Positions 210 to 18,363 of a DNA stretch of 18,363 nucleotides are shown here, piece by piece. The stretch comes from Bugula neritina (taxonomy: Eukaryota; Animalia; Bryozoa), in the NCBI GenBank assembly GCA_964035545.1, contig CAXIUT010000231.1, positions 1-18,363 of the forward strand, read 5' to 3'. Made by a program: the position numbers and the translations under genes. The notes under the pieces were generated by a model that was given only the letters and a program-made list of their open reading frames with translations, searched no databases and was not told where the DNA came from. Every line of letters begins with the position of its first letter. Positions within the stretch are counted from its first letter, which is position 1.

Positions 210-1270
210 ATGTTTCTATAATATTTTATGTCAGAAAACTCATTTGGATAATACAAAAAATCAGACATAGCTTTTTATAAAGGCTACCAAACATACAGAA
301 ACTCATACATATTTTAAATAGCTCTGCATCTTATCCAATTTACTATTCTAGTAATTTTTATTCCCATCAATATTACTCTTCAATCTCCAGAGCCATAAAT
401 CATAGTTGCATAAATAATCGCCCTAGCAAGCGCCATATTCTCATCTATAATCTATCTTTATCAATACTGCTTCTTGTTCAAAAGATAAGGAATACTAGGT
501 TACCTAAAACTAGCTAGAGACACTCTACATGCAACAGAATAAGTATTGGAAAAAGTTGATTCTGAATAAAATTGCACAAGTAAAACCATTCTAGACAATC
601 AGAGTGGAGTGACTGTCGAAGGAGTTCCTTAAAAAACAATATAGGTATTAAGTTTAGTATATAGGTTTTTGGGAAAGTAGCTAAATTTCATATCTAGCAA
701 GTAAACTAAGGTCAAAACTATCATTTAAGATGCTGGTAAAAAATATAGTACTTTGCCAGTGTAGCTGCTATAATAATCGTTATAGTTATGATGGCTATCA
801 GTGATGAAATCAATACAGCTTAAATAATCGTTCTCACTTTGTTTTTAATTCTCGAAGCCATCAGCAAATGGAAAATCATCCTAGTAGCACTATTGGTAGC
901 AATTTCACCTATTTTATGCATATTTTTCTGTGTCTATATGTGTTGCTGCGCCCCATCACAATAAGTAACTGTCCTAGATATATCTCCTATCAAAGCTACT
1001 GCATAACACGTAATCAAATGCGATGGATAATGCGCTATTTGTCTTATGAATGTGCAACCAGAATAGAGTATATATCAATTACCTTGCTCTGATAAACATG
1101 TCTTTCACAGAGGGTGTATAGATAAATGGGTTCGAGTTAAACAGTCTTGTCCTACTTGTAGAAAGTTGCTGCCTTTTAAAGAAGTGGCTGTTGGACCTGG
1201 AGCTGAAGACATGAGAGTGGGGAATCAAGAATAAGAATATTAGCCTGAACCGGTTTTGATGCCTGTTTGA
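210..1270 (+). CDS. Multi-pass transmembrane RING-H2 E3 ubiquitin ligase (~346 aa; one 20-nt intron at 645-664)
   Basis: Open from ATG210 (alternative ATG228) to TGA1268-1270 with TAR=Glu after removing the intron. About 4-5 hydrophobic segments precede the RING-H2 pattern ECAICLMNVQPEESIYQLPCSDKHVFHRGCIDKWVRVKQSCPTCR. Confidence 0.9.
645..664 (+). other. 20-nt spliceosomal intron
   Basis: gtattaagtttagtatatag. Removing it joins the N-terminal frame to the RING frame; the unspliced frame hits TGA near 789. Confidence 0.85.
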
Positions 1271-1315
1271 TTCTACTTATTTTGATTATTATATAAGTAT
1301 ATAATTTCAGTTAAT

Positions 1316-3662
1316 ATGTCAAAATACTCACCTTTATCTCACAATCAAAACGACCTTCAATCTTCTCCTTTTACTCTCTCTCAAACTCTATAGGTATGTA
1401 TTACTTAAAATAGAGACCTAAGAAAAGGAAGTAAAATATGAACTTGATGTTAAATAATACTTTAGGTCCATAGTGTCTAAAAACATATTTTGATGAAATA
1501 TCACCAATGAAAACAGAAAAGAAAGAAGGAACTATGCAAAATAACGTATTTTTATTATTATAGCAAAATAAAAAACTACTGGCATAAAATAGCTAAATGG
1601 TATAATTGATCCATAAAAAGCAACAAATGATCGAAATACTATAAAAAAAGAATTTTACTAGATTAAAATAAAAAGAATAAATACTAAAAGATATGGATAA
1701 ATAGAAAAAAAGATTTATTGGTTAAGTAGCTACCTATAAAAATTAAAGTTAATCAAAAATAGCTTTATTGTAAAAGTAAACATATTATTTGAAATAAAAA
1801 GTATCAAAAATTGATAAATAAAAGAAAAAATAAATATAAGTTGTTAATAAAAATTATCAATCAGCTGTAAAAACACTTTAATAAGAAAAATCAAAATATA
1901 AATAACTCAAATAGCAGAAATAGAAATATTTGAATTCTGATCGAGTATAAATGAACGAGACAATATAGAAATTAAAAAATAGTTTATTGAAGGCATAAAA
2001 ATAAACATAAAAAGCTTTTTAAAAGAAAAGTAAAGATCTAGAATAACAAAAACTATTCTATTAAAATAAAATATAAAAAATACATCTTGAAAATCGTAAA
2101 AATAAAGAATAATTTTTTTAGTAACATTAAAATCAAATATCTAAATTATAAAACAAAATATCATAGATAGAATAAAATACAAAGATAAAATAAAATTTGA
2201 TGCAAACGAAATAAATATAAATGAAGAGATAAATTCAAAGATACGAAGATGATAAAAATAAATGGGATAATCAAATGTAAAATATAATACTTCATTGTAA
2301 TGATAAAATCGTTAAAAATAAACAGAGTTTGTAGATAATGCTAGAAAATTAAAATTAAAATATATTGGCAAGTAATCAGCATGAGATTGACAATTTAGTT
2401 AAGCAAAATAATACTTTAAATACACTTCTTTCGACCAAAAATAAAGAGATTAAAAATATAAGTAATTAGATAGAATCTTTAAGAGAACTCTATAAATAAC
2501 AACTACAGTATAATTAGAAAGTTATTTAATCAATATCTTAGAAGTTATAACTTAAATAAAAAGGAAATTAATAAGAAAAATAATTGATGAAAGCTAAATT
2601 AACTATATTAAGATAAAGCGATATTTCTGGGTTAAAAAATTTATACTAAAATTAAATACAATTATTAAGCAATCAATTGGTAGAAAAATAAAGAATAATT
2701 GAAGATTTTAGATAAAAAATGCAAGCTTAATTGAGATGCAAAGTTTAAATAAAAAAGAAATATTAATTTGAAATATCTAGGTATAAAAATTAAATCTTAA
2801 ATCTGAAAAGTGAAATAACTTCACTTTAAAAATAAATAAATCATAAAAGATAAAAAAAAATATTTTTGTAAATATAAATGAAAAAAGCAAGACATAATTA
2901 TAGAAATAATAATAAAAAGAATAATATATTCATCATAACTAGATATCTAACCTTCAATCAATCATAGCTGCAAAAGATGAATAATTAGTTCATTTATAAA
3001 CTAAATTTTAATTATTTAAGTCCAATCAAAAACAATAAATCATACAAAAATAAAACTAACTAAAAAATTAGAAAGAAAAGACTTAATAATAAGTTTTATA
3101 AAAATAAAAAATATTAGATTAAATACATAAATAGTTAAATAGATAAATAAATAATAATAAATCATTTCAATAAAATCATAATAAATAGATTAAATAGATA
3201 TAGATGAAATATTAAAATTAAATAGATTAAATTAGTCATCACTTTTAAAGATAAAAAATGTAGTATTAAAATAAAATTAGTTAGTTAATCAAAAATAACA
3301 GAAATCTATAATTTTAAATTAGTTAACTCAATAATAAAATCAATCTAATGTAAAATAGTATGATAAATATTCAATAAACATAAAAACAAATCAAATTTAG
3401 ACTCAAAAATAGAATAAAAAACTTAAATAGTTCTATAATTAGGAACTAAAGAATAGATATGAATAAATATAGGACCTCAAATAGAGAAACAATCAGTTAT
3501 CAAGTGATATTTTAGATTCAAAATAAAATTATTCCAATTTATAACAAAAATTCTAAAACCCTCATCTAATCCCAAAACACTCTAACAGAACTCTAAAACA
3601 AAGTAATGAATATAGGTAAATAAAACAGTCTTATCAACTCCCTTCAAACCCTCCACAAATGA
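1316..3662 (+). CDS. Long Glu/Lys-rich coiled-coil protein (~770 aa; intron 1394-1413, probable intron 2868-2887; frame uncertain at ~3240-3560)
   Basis: ATG1316 to TGA3660-3662. With TAR=Glu it gives heptad-like text such as LYENEIQLLSNQLVEKERIIEDFREKM, KYEFEISRYKNEILNLKSEI and AKDEELVHLETKFE. No catalytic motif. Confidence 0.75.
1394..1413 (+). other. 20-nt spliceosomal intron
   Basis: gtatgtattacttaaaatag. Required to join the ATG1316 frame to the long downstream frame. Confidence 0.8.
2868..2887 (+). other. Probable 20-nt intron (alternatively an indel error in the A9 run at 2852-2860)
   Basis: gtaaatataaatgaaaaaag has the modal length and gives the frame 1 to frame 3 switch needed for the Glu-rich reading. 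It ends in AAG rather than TAG. Confidence 0.45.
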
Positions 3663-3754
3663 ACAATTATTTCTAATTTGATAGTTTATCATTTGATAGT
3701 TTAATTCAACATTCATATTAGATAAAATACCATATTAATTTTATATCAAAAGCT

Positions 3755-4404
3755 ATGAGTGAAATCGACGACGGTTCTCTAAAAAATTATAAAACCATAA
3801 TTATCGGTCGATCAGCTGTCGGCAAAAGCACTCTTTTGATCCGATATGTCGATTGCTAGTTCAATCCTCAAAAACCTACCATCGGCATCGACTATCGCTT
3901 CAAAAAGGTCAGCCATCATGACTCGACTTTCAATTTATAACTATGGATTCAGCAGGTCAAGAGAGATATCGAACAATAGTGTACAATTATTTTACTTTAT
4001 CAAAAGCAGGAGTCATAGTATTTGATTTAACGAATGAAGATTCATTGAATGATGCTAAGAGTTGGTTGCAAAATTTAGTTAATCATTGTGGTAATGAGAT
4101 ACCTAAAATATTATTAGGAAATAAATGTGATTTGTTAAGTCCTGGAGAGCTGAATGATAAATTATAGAAATACAAGGAGAAGATAAATTAATTAAAAAAT
4201 GATTTTAATTGTTAATTTTTTACTGTTAGTGCTAAAACAGGATAAAATGTTAATGAAGCCTTCAATTATCTAACTAAATAAATTTATAATAGAAATAAAG
4301 TTAGTTCTCCTTAAAATGTAAAAAAAACATAAACTTTTAAACTCAAATCATCATATATATCAGTCCAGGAAGAATAAAAGAAAAAAAAGAAAGGATGCTG
4401 CTGA
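3755..4404 (+). CDS. Rab-family small GTPase (~216 aa) with an apparent one-base deletion at 3944-3947
   Basis: Motifs: G1 GRSAVGKST, effector PTIGIDY, G3 LELW/DSAGQERYR, G4 GNKCD, G5 SAKTGENV, and a polybasic prenylation end KKKKKGCC-TGA. The span is 650 nt; TGG GAT needs one more G than is present (ctatggattca). Confidence 0.92.
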
Positions 4405-4552
4405 AATATAATTGATTATTGCTCTTTAAATAAATAAAAATATTTTACTAATTCAATAGTAAAAGGATTTGAATTCTAAATATATTTATTTATTTTACAG
4501 TTACAATAATATTTAAGCTTGTTATCTGTTCTGATTTGATATTACATTATAG

Positions 4553-4996
4553 ATGGGCAATTGTGTGAGTAGTAAAGAAGGCAAGTAAAACAACTATGGT
4601 CAGAAAGGAGGTGATGATACCAAATATCTCAAACATGCAGACACTTTTCCATTGTAAAAGGGCGATGAAGAAACCTTTAGGAATGGTGGAATATTGAAAT
4701 AAAAGATCAATAACCTCGAAGACAGCAAAATTAAGGAGCATAAAAGATTGCATAGGTTCTCCCTTAATGAGAAAGTTCCTGGAGAAGGATAAAGATAAAA
4801 AACGAAAGAAATCTATGACTAAGGGAACATTCCAACTGAAACCAGTTCCAGGAATATGAAAGGGATAACTCCACTAGAGGATGTTTTTTTGAGTGAAAAG
4901 AAGTTCAGAAGACATAGCTAATGTCTCGAAGTAAACAGAGAGTATAGTATGTGTGCTTCCGAGATGAAGAAATGGCTTAAGAAGGTTAGAACTTGA
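4553..4996 (+). CDS. Hypothetical 147-aa protein with an N-terminal MGNC myristoylation/palmitoylation motif
   Basis: Uninterrupted ORF MGNCVSSKEGKENNYG...SEMKKWLKKVRT-TGA under table 30. It is hydrophilic with a basic C-terminus. The supplied minus-strand ORF 4547-4753 is its shadow. Confidence 0.75.
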
Positions 4997-5429
4997 TAAT
5001 GGATTATTTTTGATTTAGAAAAGAATGGGTTTATTCTAAAATTCAGTTTGAAAGAAGTTTGATGGCATAGAAATTATCCTTTACCTTGAAGCCTGTTATT
5101 TTTTTGAAAATAAGATTATATGTTTCTTGATATAATATATCACTCCTTTCATATGGAACAAATCAAATAGATAAAGATTAAACAAAATTATACAAGAGGT
5201 CGCTTGATCTTTCTTAAAATTCATTTTATTATTCAAGCCTAAGAGTTTCTGAAAATATTTCTTCTTGATTTTGAGTTATCAATTTTAAAAGCAATAGAAA
5301 TAGAATAAATAAGATTAAAAAATGAAACTTAGGTATTATTTGATTATATTATGATAGTAAATATTTTCCATGATTAAATTCCTAATTATTATTCCATCTC
5401 TATTATAATAGAAGAGTTTTTTGAGAAGA

Positions 5430-6345
5430 ATGTCAGTCACTATTTCCAACCACGTTGAAATCAATCAAAGTCCTACCAATAGATCTCCATCTAAAATGCA
5501 ATACTCCTTTCCCAAAACAGCTCGGTTTAGCTCTCGTCGCCTAAAATAGTACCTTCCATCCTACTTAGATGTGACCGCTTCTATAACCTCCCATCCACTA
5601 TTGACAACTGTAGAACCACCTCGCTTGGCTTTGGGCATAAATATGACTTCACTCATGAGTATTTATTATTTTATCTAGTGCACCCAAAAATCCTCCACCT
5701 AATACCTATGACATCCCCAGCACTTTTACACCCAAAAACAACAGCTATGGATTCGGAAAAGGTAGAGAAGAAATGGAAGCAACTGGTCCCTTATCTAGTG
5801 TTAGATCCAACAAAAATCCAGGACCTGGAACTTATTAATATTCATCAACGAACTCTCATTCAGCCTTTTCTTTAACTAGCAAACCAGTTGAAGAAGACAA
5901 AGAAAAGTTAAAGATTCCAGGACCAGGCACATACCCTGTCTCTTTCTGTCTCAGCCAAAGTGGAAACTATTTCCTCTCCACATATAAAAACAGCTGCACT
6001 AGAGACTTTAGTAAAACAGGAGGAAGACCTAAAGTGTTAGGAAATAAAATACCAGGACCAGGATCCTATAGCACTAATCAAGTGGATTTATCTCCTCAAG
6101 GAAAATACACAATATCAAGATTAAAAAATTGTTTGACTCGTAAATTTGCAATTACAACCAGAAAACCTATCAACTAGAACAATTTGAACCCAGGACCTGG
6201 ATCTTATAAAGTTCCAAGTGATTTTGGACACTACATGGACAGAAAAGCCTTCAATGATCTCAATGGAATGAGTTCCAGAGGAAATAGATCAATGGAAAAA
6301 TCTCTCTAAAAAGTTAAAACAGAAGAAACTGCTTCCAAGGTTTGA
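5430..6345 (+). CDS. SHIPPO-repeat (sperm-tail PG-rich, ODF3/STPG-like) ciliary protein, 291 aa; 20-nt introns at 5549-5568 and 5659-5678
   Basis: Repeated PGP motifs NPPPNTYD, NPGPGTYE, IPGPGTYP, IPGPGSYS and NPGPGSYKVPSDFG, plus YSFPKTARF and TSLGFGHKYDF. The frame is continuous only after both introns are removed. Confidence 0.9.
5549..5568 (+). other. 20-nt spliceosomal intron (splits a TA|A Glu codon)
   Basis: gtaccttccatcctacttag; restores the frame. Confidence 0.85.
5659..5678 (+). other. 20-nt spliceosomal intron
   Basis: gtatttattattttatctag; restores the frame. Confidence 0.85.
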
Positions 6346-6509
6346 TTCTTTAATTCATTATTTTGATCTTAATCATGGTCTAGTCAATGATAATAACTTT
6401 ATTCAAAAGATCTTAACATTTTTGCATTACTTATTGACTTTGAAGTCACTATAGCTGAATAAACTAAATGAAAGGAACGACTGAGATAAGATTAATTTAT
6501 TTGATTCAA

Positions 6510-6849
6510 TCAGAAACGTTGCCTACGAATACCAGCCAAGCAAGCCCGATAGATATTTTCTGGTTCAGTTGGAAACATTTATGAATGCACTCTAAGATCA
6601 TCAATAGCCTCAAGTTCACCCACTTCTGTAGCCATTGATTCAGTTGTAAATCTTCTGCACATTTTTCTAGCTTCTTCTCTTCCTTTATCACTATTGACTC
6701 GTCCAGTTCCATAGTCGCAACCTTTCCAACAGATACTAATCGATGGGTTATAACTGGGTTAGAAAGAAGTACAAGACGAAGGTTTCCATACATGCGGCAT
6801 AGCAAGGTCCTCCTTAATATCGGTTGTTCCAGATTCCAAGAGCTGACAT
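6510..6849 (-). CDS. Small Cys-containing hypothetical protein (106 aa; 19-nt intron at 6754-6772)
   Basis: MSALGIWNNRYEGGPCYAACMETFVFYNPSISICWKGCDYGTGRVNSDKGREEARKMCRRFTTESM...PENIYRACLAGIRRQRF-TGA after removing gtacttctttctaacccag. Contains two CxxxC motifs. Confidence 0.75.
6754..6772 (-). other. 19-nt spliceosomal intron
   Basis: Minus-strand gtacttctttctaacccag; the unspliced frame hits TGA. Confidence 0.75.
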
Positions 6850-7001
6850 GTTGACTATTAAATAATTATCATAATTTCATCATTCAGCAGTCAATCATTT
6901 AAGTTCAATGAAATCATAAGGAAATAAATGAAAATTCATTGATGAAATATGACATGACTAAAAATTGAATTTATTATTTGGTTATTAAATAATAGTTGTT
7001 G

Positions 7002-7474
7002 ATGAAAAGTAAACGAGGAAAATCATCATCAAAGAAAGAAACCGAAAGCAAGAGTAAATAAAACTCTTTGATTTCTACTCTTATAAGAAAACATCAACCA
7101 ATGATCGAATAAATAGATAAAAAAGATCAAATCGCACTTCTTTTGTAAACCATACTATCTGGTTCAGATGAAGAACTTCAAAAAATATTGTAGTAATGGG
7201 TAAAATAATTGATATTTAGAGTGATTTTTCAGGAATAAATCAAATAGTATCTAGTTGGGGTTCAGGAAATTCTCTTCTTCTTTTCAACAAATTAATCCCT
7301 TATCTTAAAAAATAAAATAAAAGATGGACATATCCATGGCTCAAAGCCCTCCTCAGTCTAAATCTCCAAATCTCATAAAAAACAAGAAATTAATTTCAAA
7401 CAAACATTCAAAACTAAAACATGAATTTATAAAACGTTCTAAAACTAACAGGAAAGCTATAATTATTAGAGTGA
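7002..7474 (+). CDS. 150-aa protein resembling a stand-alone Utp12/Dip2 (Utp5/WDR43 C-terminal-like) helical domain; 20-nt intron at 7200-7219
   Basis: IALLLETILSGSDEELQKIL...WLKALLSL...VLKLTGKLELLE-TGA resembles the LLxQaLxSxDxxlL...W+kxLL...LxGkLxll pattern of that domain. The N-terminus is basic and NLS-like. The ORF is solid; the family is recalled from memory. Confidence 0.6.
7200..7219 (+). other. 20-nt spliceosomal intron
   Basis: gtaaaataattgatatttag; restores the frame. Confidence 0.85.
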
Positions 7475-7565
7475 TATTTTTACTTAACCATCATATCTAT
7501 TTATTTCATTTAACATACCAACTTTATACCTGAGCACACGCTGTAATAGTAATATATTAAATAGC

Positions 7566-10530
7566 ATGGGAGCTGCCTAAAATTAGAGCACATACTCTGA
7601 AATCCGACTGAATCATCCCCATCTAATCAACTGCAGAGGAATAACTAAAAATAATCTCACCTATCTCAATACCACCCTCATGTGCCAAAAACCACAGTAT
7701 GAACAATGGAAAAAAGACATAAAAACATTCAAATCTAAAACTCTATAAACATAACATTTATTTCTACCCATAAAACATAAATTCTAAGACGGAGGAGTCT
7801 GCTCAACAACCGGATAATTACAGGTAAATACTGATCTAGTTAGATTGCCTATTAATTTTACCCCAAGTTGCTGTAGACCTAGATTCACGATAGAATGAAT
7901 AATAAGAATAAATTCAGCTAAGCATAACTATGGTATCTTTTATACGTATTGGTATAAGTTCGATAGACGCTTATTTCCCAAGGCATGGAAATAAATGATT
8001 TACAACCGCGTAACATCTTTCTCAATGTTGATCAAAAAGTAAAAGTAGCCTGTCCTCTCTCATGGCCAGGACATCTCTCTCTGTATAGACAAGCTGTCCT
8101 AGAATAGTCTTTCGAATATCTATCACCAGAAGATATTGTCAGATTGAAGTTAGGAGCTCTTGATAATAAGGCCAACTTCTAATCATAGATCTTTTCAATG
8201 GGATTAACTTTATTGTCAGCAAGTTCTTTGCAAAGTTAGAAGGAGTTATATAGAGCTAAAGATCGTGACTTTGATTAAGAATTATTTGGAGCTCGATTGG
8301 CTATTTTTCAACAAGATAAGTCTTACTCTTAAATATATCGATCAGTAGTTTGCAACCTTTTAGAAATGGATCCCTAAAAAAGAATGAATCAAGAATAACT
8401 GACATAATTACTCTTTAAACATCGTTAAAATTTATAAGAATTGAAACCATTGATGTTTGACAATGTTGGCAAAAAACTACAACAATCTCTAAACGGTTTA
8501 TTAAGGATAGCCCCTCCAGTTAAAAATTAAATATCTAATTCAAGTTCAAGAGCATCAAATGTCCTGCCCATCAGCAATAAATACAGTAGACAACAGGAAG
8601 GTAGAGTTTAAAGTGTACCTAATGTTGTCCTTTAAGGAGGAAGTAATCAAGTTAGACCATCTTCAAGGGAAAGAAGGTAAAGTGTTATCAATTATACATC
8701 TAATGGAAATCCTTTAACTACACCTATTTCGCCAAGAAATCAAAAAGGAGGGATTCTGTTTAATATTCCACCGATACATCCAGGAACAAATAATGCTCCT
8801 AAGACTAATAATATGCCTAGTCAAGGACCAAATCAGATGCCAAATCAAATATCAAATCAAGTACCAAATCAAATACCAAATCAAGTACCAAATCAAATAC
8901 CAAATCAAGTACCAAATCAAGTACCAAATCAAGTATCAAATAAAGTACCAAATCAAGTATCTCCAAATTATATGCATAATAATGTATATCAAATAATGCC
9001 GAATCATATCCCAAATTAGATCCCTCATCAAACAAATAATCAATTACCACCTTATCAAATGCACAATCAGATGCCTCCACGTCAAATCATTACTCATGCT
9101 GAACCAATCAGACTACCTAATTCTCATTCTCCCCCACCGAAAGTTGAATTCCACCAAAACATAGTCAGAACTCCTTCTTCTCAAGAATAAATAGCATAAT
9201 CTCTAAAAGCTCAAGCTAATCAGGTTATTTATCAACCATTCAATAATATAAATAGACCATAGATAGCTCAAACTCAAAATCCATAGGGCTATCTTTATTC
9301 TCAAAATAGATATCAAGAAACGATAGGTTAAAGAAGCGGATAGGGCGGATCAGGATTAGGTAATTTATTGATAGAAACTAGAAAAGAAGTCCTTCAATCT
9401 GATATAGGTAAGATAGATAATAACTAATCTAAAAAAATAGCTGATTCATCTGTAATAAAAAAAGAGTATTAAAGTGAGTTAATCATAGCAAAAGATAAAA
9501 AATAATACTAATCTTAAGTTACTTAACCTATTAAAAATTAAATCAATCAATAAATATTCAACCATCATCATCAGTTAAAAAATAAATATCAAGTGTTAAT
9601 AAAAAAGAATAAAGTATCGTTTAAAAAATAAAATAGGTATAAAATAATCAATAAGTTAAAGTTTAATTAAAGGAATAAAAGAAAATAGAGTAACATCAAC
9701 TTTAAAAACAAATATCTCCTAAAGTAAAAGTATGGGGATTTCAAAAAGGAAAAGCAGAAGATAAAAATAAAACAGACAACATCAAACCTTCAGAAACTGT
9801 ACAAGTTAAATAAATAAAAATATATACAAAAAAATAATCAAATAACTAAAATAAATAACTACATAACCAACAAAATTATAAAGAGCTAAAAGAAGTCAAA
9901 GTACTATAAAGTTAAAAAACAAATCAATCAGATGAAAAAATAAACAAGAAGTAATTTGTTATTTAGCCAAAATAACCAAAAGCAAGTAACTATATTCTCA
10001 TCGAAGAACCAAGTAAAAATCCAACAGAAAAAGAATCATAATTACGATCAGATAAACCAAGCTAACCTAAACCTTAATCCTCAATAAACAAATAAGAATC
10101 AAATCAATAAGTCCACTCATAAACTAGAAATAATTTTGTCTTTTTGAGTGTACCTACTGAAGGCGAGTTCGACGATTGCTGGAACGAATTAAAAATAATG
10201 TTCAAAAAACCATAAGAATATTGCAATAAAATCAATGCTGATAAAGTCTTTACCAATGAAAGTTAACGTGGACAATGTTTGAAGATAGGACCAGCATAGA
10301 TGAAAGTTAACTTGAATTATGAACAAGGTAAAATATGGTTATAAAAGTTGCCTAAATCTAAATGCTAGGGTGATTTTTTATGCGGAGTTATTAAAAAATA
10401 AGATCAAAAACATCATATCTGGTTCAATTCATCTATGACCTATAAAAACAAACGCTTTCCTTCAAATTAAGTCATGCAAGAAGGACTAAACATTCTACAA
10501 AAAAACATCAACCTCTCCAAAAGAACATGA
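7566..10530 (+). CDS. Large protein (~980 aa): N-terminal pseudokinase, Pro/Asn/Gln low-complexity repeat region, Glu/Lys-rich linker and a C-terminal globular domain; intron 7824-7843; apparent -1 frame break near 9533-9543
   Basis: MGAA start. Kinase C-lobe motifs IAYEFY, FSEAELWYLL, INDLQPRNIFL, YLSPE, SEIFSMGLTLL and LLEMDPEKRM. Frame 2 reads well to ~9530, then frame 1 (KKEESIVEKIKEVE...) runs to TGA10528-10530. Confidence 0.8.
7824..7843 (+). other. 20-nt spliceosomal intron
   Basis: gtaaatactgatctagttag. It contains an in-frame TGA, and its removal joins the kinase frames. Confidence 0.88.
8828..8959 (+). repeat. Coding 12-nt tandem repeat, 11 units of (C/T)CAAATCAA(G/A)TA encoding (P/S)NQ(V/I)
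   Basis: Directly visible as PNQM PNQI SNQV PNQI PNQV PNQI PNQV PNQV PNQV SNKV PNQV. It generates the three overlapping ORFs in the supplied track. Confidence 0.95.
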
Positions 10531-10584
10531 TTCAATTGATTTATTTATACATATCCAATAACTATGATTGTTGTTTAATTGATA

Positions 10585-11217
10585 TCATATGCAATAGTGA
10601 TCATCCTGTTCCTCAACATTCCACCCCTCGATCATCTCCTCCCTCACATTCCCTCTCATTTCCATACTATTAAGTCTATTTTTATAATTCTTATTCAAAA
10701 CATGAATATAAGCCGAAGAAGGACGACCAATTCCGCTCTTCCCCTTCATGCAACTCAATCTAAACTAATGTTCATTCAAACGATCGCCAAATGGTTTTCT
10801 ACTAAATCGACCCACAGTCAGATCATTATTCTTTCTATAAGATATGTTCTATTAGTTAGGCTAGAAGGACCTCTGAGTACGAATTCGTAATTTTTTAGTA
10901 TTGTTGCTATGAATTATCGCTTTTGATACCTCTACGCCACATGAATTTTTATGGCTACTTGTAGTTATGTATTTTCTTAATATCTCGGTCTTTACTATGT
11001 TTTACTAGTTTTCATAGTTTGGTTTATAGTTTTCATAGTTTGATTTATAGTTTTTTTATAATTATACCTTCCTTTTGCTTCTATATTGTTTCGACAAAGT
11101 CACCGCCAGCAAAGATCCCTGAGGAGTAATATTTTTATGATTAAATTGACTCCTTCGATGAATAGTAAATAAAGTCGATCGATATTTGTTTGAGTTCTAT
11201 GGAATCTATGTATTCAT
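10585..11217 (-). CDS. Hypothetical basic low-complexity protein (210 aa)
   Basis: Uninterrupted ATG11217 to TGA10585: MNTEIPENSNKYRSTLF...REEMIEGWNVEEQDDHYCI. It has a short internal 21-nt duplication (NYKSNYE/NYKPNYE). Confidence 0.75.
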
Positions 11218-11274
11218 CTAATAAAAATTGGAAAAAAAGAAAATATATTTTATTAATCATAAAACAACATATTA

Positions 11275-12207
11275 TCAATCATCATCATTGTCTATTATAA
11301 ATTATGACTAATTTGAAAACTACTAATCCTCCATATAGTTCTGATCCCAATCAGATATCTTCTCAATACATTTCTTCACATACTACTCTATCTATCTAAA
11401 CTTTTTTATATGAATATTGTCCAAGTCAAATAAATACTACTTTACCTCAGATGATGACTCAAACATTATATAAATTATCTGCTGTAGATGCTCAGATGAC
11501 AACTTACGGATCATCATCCCCAGCTGTCTCTTTTCATGAGTAGTTGCTACTTTGTATGTAGATAATGGCTGATACTGCTTTACCTGAGAACCTTTCTTGC
11601 GACCTCCTTGATTTGCCCTCAACTAACCACGTTTAGGATCTCCTCTTTATATTTTCATGAGGTGGATTAAAAAGTTGTCAAGCTAGCCAGCTTGACGATA
11701 CTCCATCGTGTTCCTCGGTTGACTATAAGCAGCAAGAAATAACCTTTTCATATCGACTTATAGATCTTCTATGCTATAACTTTCTGATAGTTTTTTAGCT
11801 TTTTACTCAATTTATATCAAAGACAGATGAGACTAATCTTTTCTATAATTATAGAGATGTCGATATGCCTGATGACTTCCCAATCTCTACAAAAGTTTAA
11901 TACTCGTCCCCACTGCAATTGAATACACTTCAGGAATAGATGGAATTACTATTGATTTCTTTTAAGGCTCATATTCATCTTCTTTCTAGATTTTAACTCG
12001 AACTTGTGGCGCTACCTGCGGTACCACTTGCGGTGGAGTAAGTGACTACACTGATACTGCAGGTGTAATTTTCTTTTTAGGTGCTGATTTTTGAGTACCA
12101 CGTTTGATTAGTTCTTCTTTAGTAACAAATTTGTATCCTTTAGGAAGAAGACAGTTTATTTTTTTTAGTTATTCACCTGAAAACTTGAAAGTGCGAATAT
12201 TATCCAT
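11275..12207 (-). CDS. BET/GTE-like protein: degenerate bromodomain plus ET (extra-terminal) domain, 310 aa
   Basis: ET domain: TTHEKRQLGMMIRKLSSEHLQQIIYIM...EYLFDLDNIHIKKFREIEEYVKKCI. Bromo-like helices: KLLERLGSH...LSLIEIEEK...YSIEDLEVDMKRLF...YRQAGELDNF. Acidic tail. No introns needed (933 nt). Confidence 0.85.
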
Positions 12208-12280
12208 GCAACAATTTAGTTAATTAGCTATTATAAATCAAATTAAAAATTGACTCTTTTAACAAATAAACAAAAAAATA

Positions 12281-14640
12281 TCAAAAACTTTGATTAACAT
12301 CCATCGACTCCCCATTCTTTTTAACTTTTTTCTTAGGATTCTTCTTTTTCTGTTTGTTTTTATTTACATTAGATTCCTTTTGCTTGTTATATGTACTTTG
12401 CAGTTCATAAAGAAAAGGTCTTTTGATAACTTTTGAATATATTTCATTCAAATTTTATTCATATTGATGATCCAAGTTTTTCCACTACTTTTTGTGTCTT
12501 TATATCTTTGCCTGAGACTATAATTCACATAATTTAGCTGTATTAGGAAGTTTCGAGAAAGGTTGTTTCATATATTTAGCAAAATTCTTATGCTTTTTGG
12601 ATCTTTCTTCGTCTTCAGCTAGCTTTTTATTGATACTGAGTTATCTCTGATAGGCATGTTGTCGATTCGCTACAACCATATCAGTAAATTTTTGAGTATA
12701 GTATATTTCTGGTGATTCTGTGTATAATATTTTTTTGTAATCATAACTTGGTTCAGATTGCTAGTATTATTCTTATTTTGCTGTATATTTATAAGGATGC
12801 CTTTCTTTGGTATGAAAATAAAACTATTGCACTTCTGTTGGTTTGAATACTATCTTTCTAGCTTCTAATTCATATTTCATTCGATCTTGCTATGCTTTAT
12901 AATCTGGAATTTCGTGAACAGATATTTATTGGGTTGGTTTTCGCTAGATCTAGAATTCATTTTTAGTTAAAGTAGCTACTCGAGGTAATTGTTATTAGGA
13001 ATACTGATATTTATCTTTTGTTAAACTTTGTATCTTCTTTTTTCTTTACATTTTTTATGATTATATTTATTCAAGTCTTGGAGATAGACAAATTTCAGGA
13101 ATAGGTCTTGGCTTAAAATTAAATTATTTTATTTATGGAGTAGAATGTCGAGATATTTGAAATAGTTTAGTTTATTTTTTAAGTTTTTATACCTATTTTT
13201 ATCTTTTCTATAATTTACTTCTTTATTTTTATCGATTCATTTTCTTTCTATTATTCAAATCAGACATAAACAACTCATATTTCTATTCACTCCTACTTTT
13301 AGAGTAGGGTCTTGCCTTAAATTTATAATTTTTAAGTTTTTCTTCTTCCATTTTTTATTTCTATTCTTTTTCATCAATCATTTCTTTAACTTTCTGTCTC
13401 CTAATTCCATTTGATATTCCTCCTGATAGCATATATTCATTATTCCAATTATTTCTAAAATTATTTTTCATAAATTCATCAGATCTAGCTCTGTTTAACT
13501 TGTTGGTCGATGATTTTTGTAATTAAATAGATTCTTAGAGACAGTTTCTTTCTTCTAGAGGATAAAAAGCAAAGGGACTTGCTGAAAAGTAAAGTAAAAA
13601 TTAATCCGAATCTACAAAGATTGGACCTTTTCGTTTGATATAATTTATTACATCTTTTATAGTCAAAGCAAGTTAATAATGATTTTTAGGTTTAACATTA
13701 GTTTAGCTATATTTTTTGATAATAATCGAATTTTATATTTTAGAAACCAATGAAAATAAAGAACAATATCCCATAAACTGATCTACAACCTTTTTAAATA
13801 TATTTTTCAATTAATTAATCACTTAAATTTTAACAAAAAATGTATTTTTAGCCTATTTTGCCCCATCTGTTTTAAATCTCTTAACCAAATGCTCAATTGA
13901 AGGCTACTAACAATACTAATAACTAATTAACATATTTTTAAATTCCTTCCAACTACTTTTAGATTTTAGCTCTTTAGTTTTATACTGAATATCAAATAAT
14001 ATTTTTTTTATATTGATTTTTTTCTTTATTATTGGAATTTATAAAACTATAGCCTCACTATAATGTATTCCTAATCTATTTATTTTTCTTATCAATTTTT
14101 TAATATCGACCATAGCTGAATCATCTTGCATTTACTACCAAATCTATTTTATCTTTTACTCTACATCATCAGTTAAAACATATTTAATATACTCTTTTCG
14201 ATTGATATTAACTTTTTTATTCAGCCTTCGAATTTAACCCATATCAATATCTCTTTAAACAAGTACAACATTGCGATAAGAAGACGTAGGCTGAGACATC
14301 TTCATCTCTTATCCCCTTCCATTCTCCTTTGATTCATAATTATTAACATCAAAATATTTCTTATCTTAATTCATTCTCTCTCCATAGATCATTTACAAAT
14401 ATTTACTGATCTAATCCCCATCTCCAACCGGAAGATGATTAATCTAACTATTTTACTAGTTAGATTCATTCGATTCTTAATACATTTTATTAATTTTGTA
14501 TCGAATGTAGTCGATATCTTGGTTGGTACTTTATCTAAGTTCATCGCGCATAGCTGCTAATTTTCTATTAAGATTTTACAACTATATAACAATGACGATA
14601 CTGTTAGGTTTTGAAGATGTTTTGATGGTTGGTAATTCAT
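12281..14640 (-). CDS. FAM161: FAM161-family (UPF0564) basal-body/microtubule protein with an N-terminal extension, 779 aa; 20-nt intron at 14582-14601
   Basis: Motifs FKARPY, FKPRPIP, IPDYKAEQDRMKYELEARK..PTEVQEFYF and YEENLNEIYSKVIKRPFLYE match recalled FAM161A/B signatures (FKAxPvP, vPDF, KRPLLFE). One open frame from ATG14640 after splicing. Confidence 0.8.
14582..14601 (-). other. 20-nt spliceosomal intron
   Basis: Minus-strand gtatcgtcattgttatatag; joins ATG14640 to the long frame. Confidence 0.8.
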
Positions 14641-14704
14641 CTGTTTAATTTAGAATTATGGGCTGAATCAAATTTGATAAAAAGCACTTGATATAAATAA
14701 ATAA

Positions 14705-16021
14705 TCATGAAACTATCTGCTTTGATTTCTTTGTATTAAATTTCTTTTTAGCACGACACGCCACCCCACTCCCATGATTCTTCTTCTTCCCTTCAAGAGA
14801 TACCTACTCACATATATTAAAAGTATCATTATTTTCATCTGATACCAGAAGTTGCAATCGCTTGGTATTTAACTTGCTTTTACTACTTGGAAGTCTATCG
14901 ATTAATTGGATGGTCTATTGATCTTTTTTTGAATGAGATGATTGTTTATTTGATTGTTTTGATTTCTATATTGATTGTGGTTTGTTTATGAGAGATTTTT
15001 CACTTTTTTAGCTTATTTATTCTATCACCTCGATTTGTTTGTCACTTTGTTATTGCAGATATTACATTGGACTTTACTAAAGGCAGTTTATGAGTATGGT
15101 TTATTTTTTGTTGAAATTGTGGTTGATCATTGACTGATCATGACTTAAAAAACTATTAATAATACTCTAATTAATTTATTTTGATTTATCTCGACTAAAA
15201 CTCAAAGAATCTTATTCCATAATAATCTAATTCTTATTTTTACTACTATTTTCATTCGATATATTACTAAGACCTGAAATACTGGTTGGTTTGCTAAAAT
15301 ACTAAAAGTTCATCAATGGTGCACTATTCTGAATAAAAGATATAACATTTGTTTGTTAGTTTTCTTATCCTTTTCTAAAATGATTCAACTAATTTCTCAA
15401 AAAAGCTATCATCAGTTCTATCATACTATTATTTATACCTTTTTATTGAATTGTCTATTATGCTTTTTTCATTTTGAATCTCTCCATCTAGACTACCTTG
15501 CAACATTATTTTCTTATTCTTTACAACTATTTTTATAACATGCTATTTGCTTTCTTATATCTCTATAACTAACAATTAACTGTCTATATTTCTTGTTATT
15601 TAGCTATTCGTTAATTCTACACTATCTTTTGCTCTTCTTTTTTATCCTGAACCAATCTATTATAACTATTCTTCAACATCTTATATTCTGACTTCAAATT
15701 TATCAACTACCCATACATTTATGTAAACTGCTTGCTATTCATCGGCATGTCATCATTCTTTTTAGTACTGCTATCTAACCTCTTACTTTTTGATCTTGTT
15801 AGCTAGTGTGGGGATTGATTCAGTCTACTCTATCTTCTTGAACTTTTACGATCTTTTGAACAATATGGTCTGATAGCATGCAAATGTTTAATATCACTTT
15901 GATTGATACAAATCGTTTCAAATTATCTAGATTTTGTTTGAGTTTATTTAATTCTGTGTTTGCTTTTAGGATTTTCTCTGTGAAAAAGAGTAGGATGTTA
16001 TGATAGTTCGTGTTTGTTCAT
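14705..16021 (-). CDS. Hypothetical protein with a central coiled coil (~438 aa; possible in-frame 21-nt intron at 15418-15438)
   Basis: 1317-nt frame with no TGA: MNKHELSEHPTLF...MYGELINLKSEYKMLKNSYNRLVQDKKEEQKIVENERIAKEQEIE...KSKQIVS-TGA. Confidence 0.8.
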
Positions 16022-16216
16022 TTGAAATTTAACGAGTATGATTAATATCACTAGTTAAAAATCTATAGAATTATTAAATATTTGAATGATGATTGTTGAT
16101 GTATACTTAAATCAGATGATCATCTATTTTTGTTTCTAGACTTATTTAGTTGAGTAGCTGAATGCTTTCAAGTATTTTGATGAAGTTTCAGGATTAATAT
16201 TCCTATTATATCGACT

Positions 16217-16688
16217 ATGAGATCAAAGAAGGACAAGAACGAAGACTACAGCTTTGATTGTGACCAATTGTCAGATGAATAAGAATCATCGTAAGAAGAA
16301 TACAGGATCAAGTTAAAGAAAACAAAGTCTAGTATTTATCATGAGGAAGGTAACAAGAAAATATCTGATGATAAAAAAAAAAAGTTAATCCAAATGGTAA
16401 CAAAATAAAACTATAGAATAAAATAAGTATTTTATATCATTATTTTAGGCAGGAAAGGCAATTCAAGTGAGTTACAGCACTGCAAAAAAGATATTTACCA
16501 ATTTTAGAGTTAATTTAAAGAAAAAAGAGAAGTTATAATCAAAATAATAAGTCAATAGTCAAAGATGTCGATATTTGACACTCTAGGAAGGCTAAGAATT
16601 TAAAAATAACAAAAAAGGAATTCAAATAATTTCTTCAATAGGAGGCGATACTCAGCTAGATGATCGAAGACAAGACGATTCATAATGA
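16217..16688 (+). CDS. Homeodomain-like helix-turn-helix DNA-binding protein (~149 aa); 22-nt intron at 16427-16448
   Basis: KISDDKKKKLIQMVTKENYRIKE|AGKAIQVSYSTAKKIFTNFR matches the K-I...L-I..V.....IKeAa..l.i.YSTAK.I HTH pattern common in ciliates. Acidic run DEEESSEEEY. First TGA at 16686-16688. Confidence 0.8.
16427..16448 (+). other. 22-nt spliceosomal intron
   Basis: gtattttatatcattattttag; joins the two halves of the HTH motif. Confidence 0.85.
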
Positions 16689-16960
16689 ATAGAGAAAACA
16701 TGATAGGACCTTGATAAATTATCTTAATTTTAATGACTTTAATTCTGGTGCTGTTAGACAGCTGATTCTTTGGTCACTAAAATCAACAGAAAAGTTAAAT
16801 TTAATAAAACAGTTCATCAGAAATAAAACTGTATATTAAAGTATATGGAAAAGTAAATTAAACTTTTTTATCTCAAAGAATATCAAATTATGCAAGATGA
16901 CCAATTAGATAACTTTTACAGGTACTTTTAATTTATTTGTTTATATGATTTTTATTAACC

Positions 16961-16971
16961 AACCCATAAAA
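16961..16971 (+). promoter_or_regulatory. Putative USE/PSE (snRNA-type upstream sequence element) for the downstream ncRNA
   Basis: AACCCATAAAA lies ~50-60 nt upstream of the first helix of the structured RNA, with TATA-like segments between (16973-16980, 16994-16998). It resembles the ACCCATAA element recalled from ciliate snRNA and telomerase RNA promoters. Confidence 0.6.
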
Positions 16972-17019
16972 ATATATATATCAAAATTATCTCTATAAGG
17001 AGCTTAAGGCTATATAAGA

Positions 17020-17204
17020 TTGAACCAAGTCAGTTGTGGCGATCCAAACTATGTACTAAATCATTTGTGCTATCTTGGAAAGGTTCAACAACTATTTGCA
17101 GGGTTGAGCTTCGGTTCCCCTGCAAACTATCCTAGTATTCCATCTCAGGCGGCAGTTGACTCACTCGAGTTGTTGACGTCTGATAAACCCTAGGCGAGAT
17201 ATTT
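17020..17204 (+). ncRNA. snR30: snR30/U17 (SNORA73)-type box H/ACA snoRNA for 18S rRNA processing (5' end approximate)
   Basis: Three hairpins: TTGAACC 17020-26/GGTTCAA 17082-88; TTTGCAGGG 17095-103/CCCTGCAAA 17118-26 capped by GAGC-UUCG-GUUC; CCTAG 17131-35/CTAGG 17190-94 with TCAGGCG 17145-51/CGTCTGA 17177-83. H box AAACTA at 17124-29. The 3' hairpin internal loop carries m1-like TATTCCAT (17136-43) and m2-like AAACCCT (17185-91), followed 7 nt later by ATA at the ACA-box position. Confidence 0.8.
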
Positions 17205-17208
17205 TTTT
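17202..17208 (+). terminator. Oligo-T (T7) tract, possible RNA polymerase III terminator
   Basis: TTTTTTT immediately follows the ACA-equivalent box. T runs are common in this AT-rich DNA, so position is the main support. Confidence 0.5.
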
Positions 17209-17355
17209 ATCATGATAAATCTCACATTTTCAACACCCAAACTACATCCAACAAACTAGCAATCGAAGATAGTCAAAGAATAAACAAACGATTAAATCAG
17301 GTAAAAGTTCAACTAAAGATATAAATAAAGTAATTGATTGAATATCATAAATAAT

Positions 17356-18124
17356 TCATTCTTTAGGACCATTGATTCCCCCATTCATACAATTTTCACA
17401 ATTACACAAATATGAACATTTAACACCCGTAAAGAAACACTCACAATATTTCTTAAAACAACTTGTCTTCTTGCAATTGCAACCCCTCTTCAACCCAAGT
17501 TAGGATTGCTCTCCCACCAACTCTGTTTTTATATCAAATGCATTTGGATTTTTCTCAAGTACGGCCCTTCTAGCCTTTTGTTTCTTGTCTTAAAAATCAC
17601 TGTTATTTCTGCATTGATAGCAAGAACACCTTTAATTACACTAAAGGCCTTTAGAAAAACACTAGCAATACATGAGCAAACATTTTGATTTTGGACACTT
17701 ACAACTGACTTAAGTAACCTTTTTTCCTACCGGCTAAGCCTAAATGCTCATTTTTTGCACTTATCTACATAAATAAAGAGCTACTCGACCATATATTCAA
17801 GCTATGTTTCCCGCTTTTTTGATTTAAATGATCCCTCATCTCTCATTTAAGAGTAGAACAGCTCCTACTAAGCTAAATTATCAAAAAGATCTTTATTCTA
17901 ATATTTTTATAAAGCTTTAGCTGATATATCTGATTAAAGGCTTATTCTATTTCAAATAAAATATACTTCTGGTTGTTGTATGAACCTCTATTTTGATAGT
18001 GTGTGCCTCCAATACTGAAGCAAGACTCATTGGAATGACGGCTGTTGATTGATATTTTAGGTTAGTTTTTGATATTGTTGAGAGGGTTAGACTGAGCGTT
18101 ACCTTATTAGTATTCAATGTCCAT
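17356..18124 (-). CDS. CRC (tesmin/TSO1/LIN54-type CXC) domain DNA-binding protein, 242 aa; 20-nt introns at 17947-17966 and 17765-17784
   Basis: Two CXC repeats, [33 protein letters not shown] and [34 protein letters not shown], joined by the hinge LEKNPNAF (RNPxAF-like). Confidence 0.93.
17765..17784 (-). other. 20-nt spliceosomal intron
   Basis: Minus-strand gtagctctttatttatgtag; the unspliced frame hits TGA shortly after. Confidence 0.8.
17947..17966 (-). other. 20-nt spliceosomal intron
   Basis: Minus-strand gtatattttatttgaaatag; restores the frame. Confidence 0.8.
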
Positions 18125-18257: not shown

Positions 18258-18363
18258 TTGGGGTTGGGGTTGGGGTTGGGGTTGGGGTTGGGGTTGGGGT
18301 TGGGGTTGGGGTTGGGGTTGGGGTTGGGGTTGGGGTTGGGGTTGGGGTTGGGGTTGGGGTTGG
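18258..18363 (+). repeat. Telomere, (TTGGGG)17 plus TTGG, at the chromosome end
   Basis: Perfect, invariant TTGGGG array running to the end of the window, with the G-rich strand oriented 5'->3' toward the terminus. Confidence 0.98.

Follow-up and report, generated by a model that had tools for sequence, protein, structure and literature searches.

The window analyzed here is the whole 18,363-base stretch of contig CAXIUT010000231.1 (28% GC) from the Bugula neritina assembly GCA_964035545.1, and the subject of this analysis is the genetic code in which its genes are written. Under the standard code, the longest open reading frame (ORF) in the window has 119 amino acids. When TGA alone was read as stop, approximately 13 genes were recognized on both strands, and the interruptions of these genes were solely TAA and TAG. 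Pfam searches with the stop-free ORF pieces detected RING-H2 (zf-RING_2), Ras/Rab, SHIPPO, BET (ET), and TCR (CXC) domains, and the stretch closes with a telomere of GGGGTT (G4T2) repeats. We identify the window as one end of a ciliate macronuclear chromosome with densely packed genes; its features are collected in the table. The initial annotation had proposed that TAA and TAG both encode glutamate and that TGA is the only stop. Our results support both proposals, and the window very probably belongs to a ciliate macronuclear chromosome whose nuclear code is of the peritrich type (NCBI table 30).

The longest TGA-only ORF spanned 807 codons, compared to a maximum of 672 codons in 200 shuffles. 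With TGA so infrequent in DNA of 28% GC, such a length is weak evidence, and therefore the argument on the code must rest on homology that runs across the TAA and TAG codons. Ortholog loci were drawn from metagenomes of JGI and ENA, from Logan contigs, and from one contig that contaminates a water-lily assembly. An 81-amino-acid piece of a Rab-like protein was used as a query, which yielded one fragment of 84% and another of 68% identity, and their contigs were then fetched. Loci L001–L006 came from JGI metagenomes (40% GC), and L007 was contig VYXN01000881.1 of GCA_008831285.2, the Nymphaea colorata assembly (46% GC). Loci L008–L017 were obtained when metagenomes were scanned for matches to the SHIPPO piece. 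The ET, CXC, and kinase pieces served as queries of word searches that led, after contig look-ups, to L018, L020–L024, and L025 with L026, respectively. The GC content of the fetched relatives ranged from 22% to 52%, and their sources were freshwater, marine-biofilm, and plant-surface samples. The block of synteny with the window begins in L001 at the RING gene and reaches the gene that follows Rab; in L007 it covers the stretch between the coiled-coil gene and Rab, both included. Both L001 and L007 have in-frame TAA and TAG codons of their own, placed elsewhere than in the window, and Rab closes with ...CC-TGA in each; therefore, they use the same kind of code. At sites where the relatives have GAA or GAG, no assumption on the code is needed to name the residue.

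The TGA-delimited frames were translated with X at TAA and TAG and compared by BLASTP, and the best non-overlapping high-scoring segment pairs on the coding strand were kept for each locus. The alignments covered 194 TAA and 65 TAG sites of the window, and one partner was taken per site, namely the closest relative with a standard codon there. As counted, the partners of TAA (n = 177) were led by Glu (59), followed by Asp (20), Gln (19), Ser (10), and Lys (10), and those of TAG (n = 62) by Glu (23), followed by Asp (9), Gln (4), Ala (4), and Lys (3). The log-likelihoods relative to Glu were −62 nats for Gln, −65 for Asp, −152 for Lys, and −295 for Tyr at TAA; the corresponding values at TAG were −24.7, −10.6, −64, and −109. 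At well-aligned sites, defined by well-aligned flanks and the absence of a gap within three columns, Glu stood opposite 42 of 93 TAA and 19 of 36 TAG codons. Bootstrapping over sites gave Glu as the winner in 1999 (TAA) and 1793 (TAG) of 2000 unfiltered replicates, and in 2000 and 1990 of 2000 filtered ones. As a control, each standard codon was left out in turn on the same alignments, and 43 of 46 were recovered; the failures were ATG, which has no synonym, and two calls from Leu/Val to Ile with small margins. In the reverse direction, the relatives' TAA and TAG paired best with Glu of the window: their UAR codons (UAA or UAG) stood opposite window GAA at 15% of sites, CAA at 5%, and AAA at 2%. 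The two codons were also interchanged between orthologs, with window TAA facing TAG of relatives 15 times and TAG facing TAA three times. Thus, glutamate is supported for TAA and for TAG, each independently, with Gln, Lys, Tyr, and Asp rejected on these alignments.

The same was observed at single genes. In the Rab-like gene, the TAA of SAKTG-TAA-NV was TAG in L001 and Glu in L007, and in the SHIPPO gene the TAG at 6175 was GAA or GAG in four relatives. For the RING-H2 gene, four of five TAG sites were opposite GAA or GAG in L001, and in the coiled-coil gene TAA paired with Glu at 30 of 80 codons. The kinase motif FS-TAA-A-TAA-LW, which had been predicted to hold two glutamates, holds them in L025 (table). 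NF-TAA-S-TAG-IF of the same gene was Glu and Glu in L025, and Y-TAA-F and DP-TAA-KR faced Glu or Asp and Asp, respectively. Comparison of the ET gene with L018 gave Glu at all six alignable TAA sites and at 7 of 11 TAG sites. At the three TAG codons of its conserved C-terminal helix, the ET domain of human BRD3, aligned via the L018 piece with a weak E-value of 0.38, has Glu, Glu, and Arg. The two CXC repeats had been put forward as an internal control, with TAG in one and GAG in the other, and this control was borne out: both L020 (66% identity) and L024 have GAA opposite the TAG at 17662. All codon positions and strands given in the initial annotation (17662–17664 and 17440–17442 on the minus strand, 7919, 7925, 9017, 9458–9478, and 9497–9517) proved correct. 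A second internal control, the peptide duplicated within 9458–9517, fared less well. Its codons are present, but its value as a control is weak because the comparison with L025 shows that the frame moves from +1 to +0 between 9385 and approximately 9700, so that the coding frame is uncertain there.

Codon composition, net charge, and population variation were also analyzed. Among approximately 4,160 codons in coding frames, TAA plus TAG made up 7.8%, GAA plus GAG (GAR) 4.5%, and CAA plus CAG 4.3%. With UAR read as Gln, every gene became strongly basic, and two coiled-coil segments reached net charges of +62 (466 codons) and +38; with UAR read as Glu, the net charges were near zero. This charge balance points to an acidic residue, for which Glu and Asp serve alike. 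With UAR as Glu, the glutamate codons were 326 UAR and 188 GAR. Measured over the same columns, the UAR share of Glu codons was 0.71 in the window and 0.15 in L018 (52% GC), and it fell across the relatives as GC rose; synonymous codons subject to mutation bias should behave in this way. Same-species contigs from three other studies, approximately 99.8% identical to the window, contained 19 variants in total. Of these, 13 lay in the ET gene or in one of the two large ORFs, and comprised eight standard synonymous changes, two TAA/TAG interchanges, GAG>TAG (present in two runs), TAA>GAA, and CAA>TAA. Synonymous variants therefore numbered 12 of 13 with UAR as Glu and 11 of 13 with UAR as Gln; this agreement with the Glu reading is suggestive.

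Every ORF ended in TGA by construction of the TGA-delimited frames. The TGA followed conserved C-termini in the relatives as well: after ...CC of Rab in three organisms, after KTEET.. of the SHIPPO protein in five, and in the ET gene. The true end of the kinase gene was the TGA at 10528–10530 and not the one at 10145.

With the peritrich-type code, UAA and UAG serve as ordinary glutamate codons, and as the majority of Glu codons in this AT-rich genome, and UGA acts as the terminator. Decoding would be performed by tRNA-Glu-derived tRNAs with UUA and CUA anticodons, and eRF1 would be restricted to UGA recognition, by analogy with other variant-code ciliates (PMC10089648, PMC4967479). UAR as glutamate with a UGA stop has been described for several Sessilida and for Campanella and Carchesium (PMC11687900, PMC10089648, PMC4967479), and for Vorticella and Opisthonecta by Sanchez-Silva et al. 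2003, as cited in PMC4967479. In UAA and UAG as glutamate, UGA as stop, and an AT-rich ciliate host, the window shows no difference from this code (table 30). The finding is real, yet it is already known biology, and it confirms the published peritrich code rather than discovering a new one. What it adds is that, in an AT-rich member, most Glu codons are reassigned ones; their share tracks GC, and mutation bias acts on them as on any synonymous codons. It also adds that organisms with this code occur without a label in public metagenome data and as contamination in the Nymphaea colorata assembly. Its practical value lies in correct annotation: under the standard code or table 6, the proteins of the genome would all be truncated or mistranslated, with approximately 8% of residues wrong and approximately 63% of glutamates affected.

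The host was considered next to the code. G4T2 telomeres are consistent with an oligohymenophorean, and the telomere repeat of the window is that of Tetrahymena. The SHIPPO gene contains two GT..AG introns of exactly 20 nucleotides each (5549–5568 and 5659–5678), the first of them interrupting a TAA codon (TA|A). The lengths of introns in peritrichs are reported to be narrowly distributed (PMC13685798). Together, the telomere, the 20-nucleotide introns, and the relatives from marine biofilm and water lily are circumstantial evidence that suits a sessile peritrich or, more broadly, a sessile oligohymenophorean. A non-peritrich host, in which UAR as Glu with a UGA-only stop arose a second time or is spread more widely within Oligohymenophorea, is unlikely; if true, the relatives of 22–52% GC would mark a broad unsampled clade with this code.

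Context-dependent readings, in which UAR encodes Glu yet terminates some genes or UGA is sometimes sense (e.g., Trp), are improbable, and they draw on two in-frame TGA codons. The TGA at 7472–7474 closes the frame-1 exon of the kinase gene, and L008 has a TGA one codon away (~11825), without an obvious GT at the matching place. An intron from GT (7471) to AG (7564), however, can remove the window TGA and join two conserved frames. The TGA at 14705–14707 is the sole TGA between two long minus-strand ORFs that share a frame, but the sequence after it looks intergenic for approximately 46 codons until an ATG, and we take it for a genuine stop that separates tandem genes. In addition, every gene for which an ortholog is available has its TGA end at a conserved position. 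We also masked all three stops as X in a search for sense TGA; this approach gave mostly spurious out-of-frame alignments, and the 7472 case was the only one worth examining. Both in-frame TGAs therefore have ordinary explanations, TGA is the only termination codon within this window, and no gene in it requires a sense UGA or a UAR stop. The Condylostoma and karyorelict codes (tables 27 and 28) share stop reassignment, but the window shows no sign of three ambiguous stops.

The common ciliate code (table 6; Tetrahymena, Paramecium, and Oxytricha) shares sense UAR codons and UGA as the only stop with the peritrich-type code, and differs in having Gln in place of Glu. Several observations weigh against glutamate, most of them toward Gln. 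Gln was the second or third commonest ortholog partner, and at TAA it made up approximately 11% of partners versus approximately 6% for GAR-coded Glu, an excess that we attribute to the single transition separating TAA from CAA. Over seven UAR sites of Rab, 148 distant representatives slightly favoured Gln, driven by the LQIWD position (3938 in the window), where 68% of 136 distant Rab sequences have Gln. The initial annotation had taken this L-TAA-LWD site as a contrary hint, which did not stand: the site needs a one-nucleotide frame correction, and both close orthologs carry GAG there. Since the subfamily's own orthologs have Glu at the LQIWD position, the substitution is family-specific. 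A second hint, the TAG of the PN-TAG-IP unit at 9017, remains as the sole contrary site of those listed; it occupies the Gln position of a degenerate repeat unit. One same-species variant was CAA>TAA, the unfiltered bootstrap support for TAG was 90%, and neither a tRNA gene nor an eRF1 gene was found in the window or the 16 fetched loci scanned. The search for TTA and CTA anticodons that had been suggested was run on these sequences only and yielded no tRNA gene.

Against Gln stand the deficits of 62 nats at TAA and 25 nats at TAG, the large positive charge that it places on every gene, and a composition of approximately 12% Gln with only 4.5% Glu. Furthermore, the other 15 Gln codons of the PNQV repeat (8825–9083) were all standard, with 13 CAA and 2 CAG counted besides the TAG, in line with the earlier statement that this repeat encodes Gln by CAA and CAG. 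Glutamine is therefore a highly improbable meaning of these codons. The tyrosine reading of the Mesodinium code (table 29), which shares the stop reassignment, was rejected by the values given above for both codons.

A split code, with TAA as Glu and TAG as Asp, another acidic residue, or an ambiguous codon, or alternatively with TAA as Lys and TAG as Glu, deserves as little credence as glutamine. At TAG, Asp came second, with 9 of 62 partners and −10.6 nats, and it won 6.6% of unfiltered bootstraps, and a UAA/UAG split exists in one oligohymenophorean (PMC11687900). In Oligohymenophorea sp. PL0344, UAA is Lys and UAG is Glu (McGowan et al., as cited in PMC11687900); UAG as Glu and the UGA stop are shared with the window, but Lys for UAA was rejected here by approximately 150 nats (152 in the alignments, with Lys at only 10 of 177 partners). 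For TAG, Glu won 1990 of 2000 filtered bootstraps, and TAA and TAG swap freely between orthologs and as single-nucleotide polymorphisms (SNPs), besides the GAG>TAG polymorphism in two runs. Finally, the view that TAA and TAG truly act as stops and that the ORFs are decayed pseudogenes or non-coding DNA, as the 119-amino-acid limit of standard-code ORFs might suggest, can practically be dismissed, because orthologs from at least five organisms of 22–52% GC hold the same frames through the UAR codons, Pfam domains run on across them, and 10 of 13 gene-body SNPs, the two TAA/TAG interchanges included, are synonymous whatever UAR means, with two more if it means Glu.

Table. Features of the 18,363-base window, with the evidence for each.
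Feature	Position	Strand	Codons and remarks	Evidence
RING-H2 protein gene	228..1270	+	frame +2 then +1 around 620-650; in-frame TAA/TAG; TGA end 1268-1270	Pfam zf-RING_2 on piece 1067-1231; L001 ortholog, 46-47% identity
Lys/Glu-rich coiled-coil gene	1450..3659	+	UAR 12-16% of codons; frame change near 2800-2940	composition, net charge, orthologs L001 and L007
Rab-like GTPase gene	3755..4404	+	2 TAG and 8 TAA; ends ...GCC-TGA (prenylation motif, then stop)	Pfam Ras, sequence, orthologs L001 and L007
TAG in Rab, VDC-TAG-F	3857..3859	+		GAA in L001, GAC in L007
TAA in Rab, FNL-TAA-LWD	3938..3940	+		GAG in both L001 and L007
Small gene, MGNC start (N-myristoylation-like)	4553..4996	+	TGA end	translation; weak L001 ortholog, 29% identity
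SHIPPO/PG-rich repeat gene	5430..6345	+	TGA end	Pfam SHIPPO-rpt; sequence; five orthologs, 62-69% identity
Small conserved gene, unknown family	6507..6873	-		79-83% identity to relative
Divergent kinase-like gene	6942..10530	+	several frames; TGA end 10528-10530	three-frame translation; orthologs L008, L014, L025, L026
FS-TAA-A-TAA-LW in kinase	7919..7927	+		L025 FSEAELW with standard Glu codons; L026 TAA at first site, Glu at second
TAG at Gln position of degenerate PNQ(I/V)P unit	9017..9019	+		gap in L025 at site
Gene of unknown family, downstream of ET gene	10588..11256	-		31% identity to neighbouring ORF in L018
ET (BET extra-terminal) domain gene	11278..12237	-	8 TAA and 12 TAG; ends DDD-TGA	Pfam BET; L018 ortholog, 51% identity over 317 amino acids
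Three TAG in conserved C-terminal helix of ET	11383..11439	-	11437-11439, 11392-11394, 11383-11385	L018: Glu, Glu, Asp
Large Lys-rich ORF	12284..14707	-	41 TAA and 21 TAG; TGA end; same-frame TGA 14705-14707 precedes	translation, composition; SNPs TAG>TAA, CGA>AGA, TTG>TTA
ORF	14708..16111	-	22 TAA and 18 TAG; ends at TGA 14705-14707	translation; SNPs TAA>GAA, TAA>TAG, CAA>TAA and five standard synonymous
ORF with DE-TAA-ESS-TAA-EE	16184..16663	+		translation; no ortholog; SNPs mostly non-synonymous, near contig ends
Tesmin/TSO1-type CXC gene, two CXC repeats	17359..17799	-	YC-TAG-CF 17662-17664; YC-GAG-CF 17440-17442	Pfam TCR; orthologs L020, L024
Telomere, GGGGTT (G4T2) repeats	18262..18363	+	~100 bases	sequence

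The frame changes of the Rab and kinase-like genes were compared with the orthologs. In Rab, the change falls within 3938–3950, where the DNA alignment shows TGGA in the window and TGGGA in L001 and L007. One G of a homopolymer is missing at 3944–3946, after ...LW and ahead of DSAGQERY; possible causes are an indel made in assembly, a true frameshift allele, and programmed frameshifting. In the kinase-like gene, the frame also switches at 7215 and 7471, and the move from +1 to +0 described above precedes a conserved C-terminal domain in frame +0 (approximately 9700–10527), whereas L025 stays in one frame. The downstream ORF of the minus-strand pair at 12284–16111 has FKARP, FKPRP, and FYFHTKER-type motifs, which we take to recall TPX2-family microtubule proteins. 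Rfam searches at the gathering threshold gave no family in the window, where no rRNA or marker gene was present, and an exact-product look-up of one window ORF gave no match on record. The gene at 6507–6873 (minus strand) is the best conserved gene of the window, and a Pfam search with it gave no match.

Other observations concern the relatives. The L007 contig is a 40.5-kb ciliate contig inside the public Nymphaea colorata assembly, presumably a contaminant from an epibiont with the same code. In the 40%-GC JGI relative, the chromosome is broken at the place matching 4996–5430, and the two parts are joined in the window. GGGGTT repeats close the 3′ ends of L002, L004, and L005, at points that vary but lie beyond the ortholog of the 4553–4996 gene, and the 5′ end of L011 carries CCCCAA repeats 1.5 kb before the SHIPPO gene. 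The same 40%-GC relative also has approximately 8 kb of extra sequence between the SHIPPO gene and the ortholog of the 6507–6873 gene.

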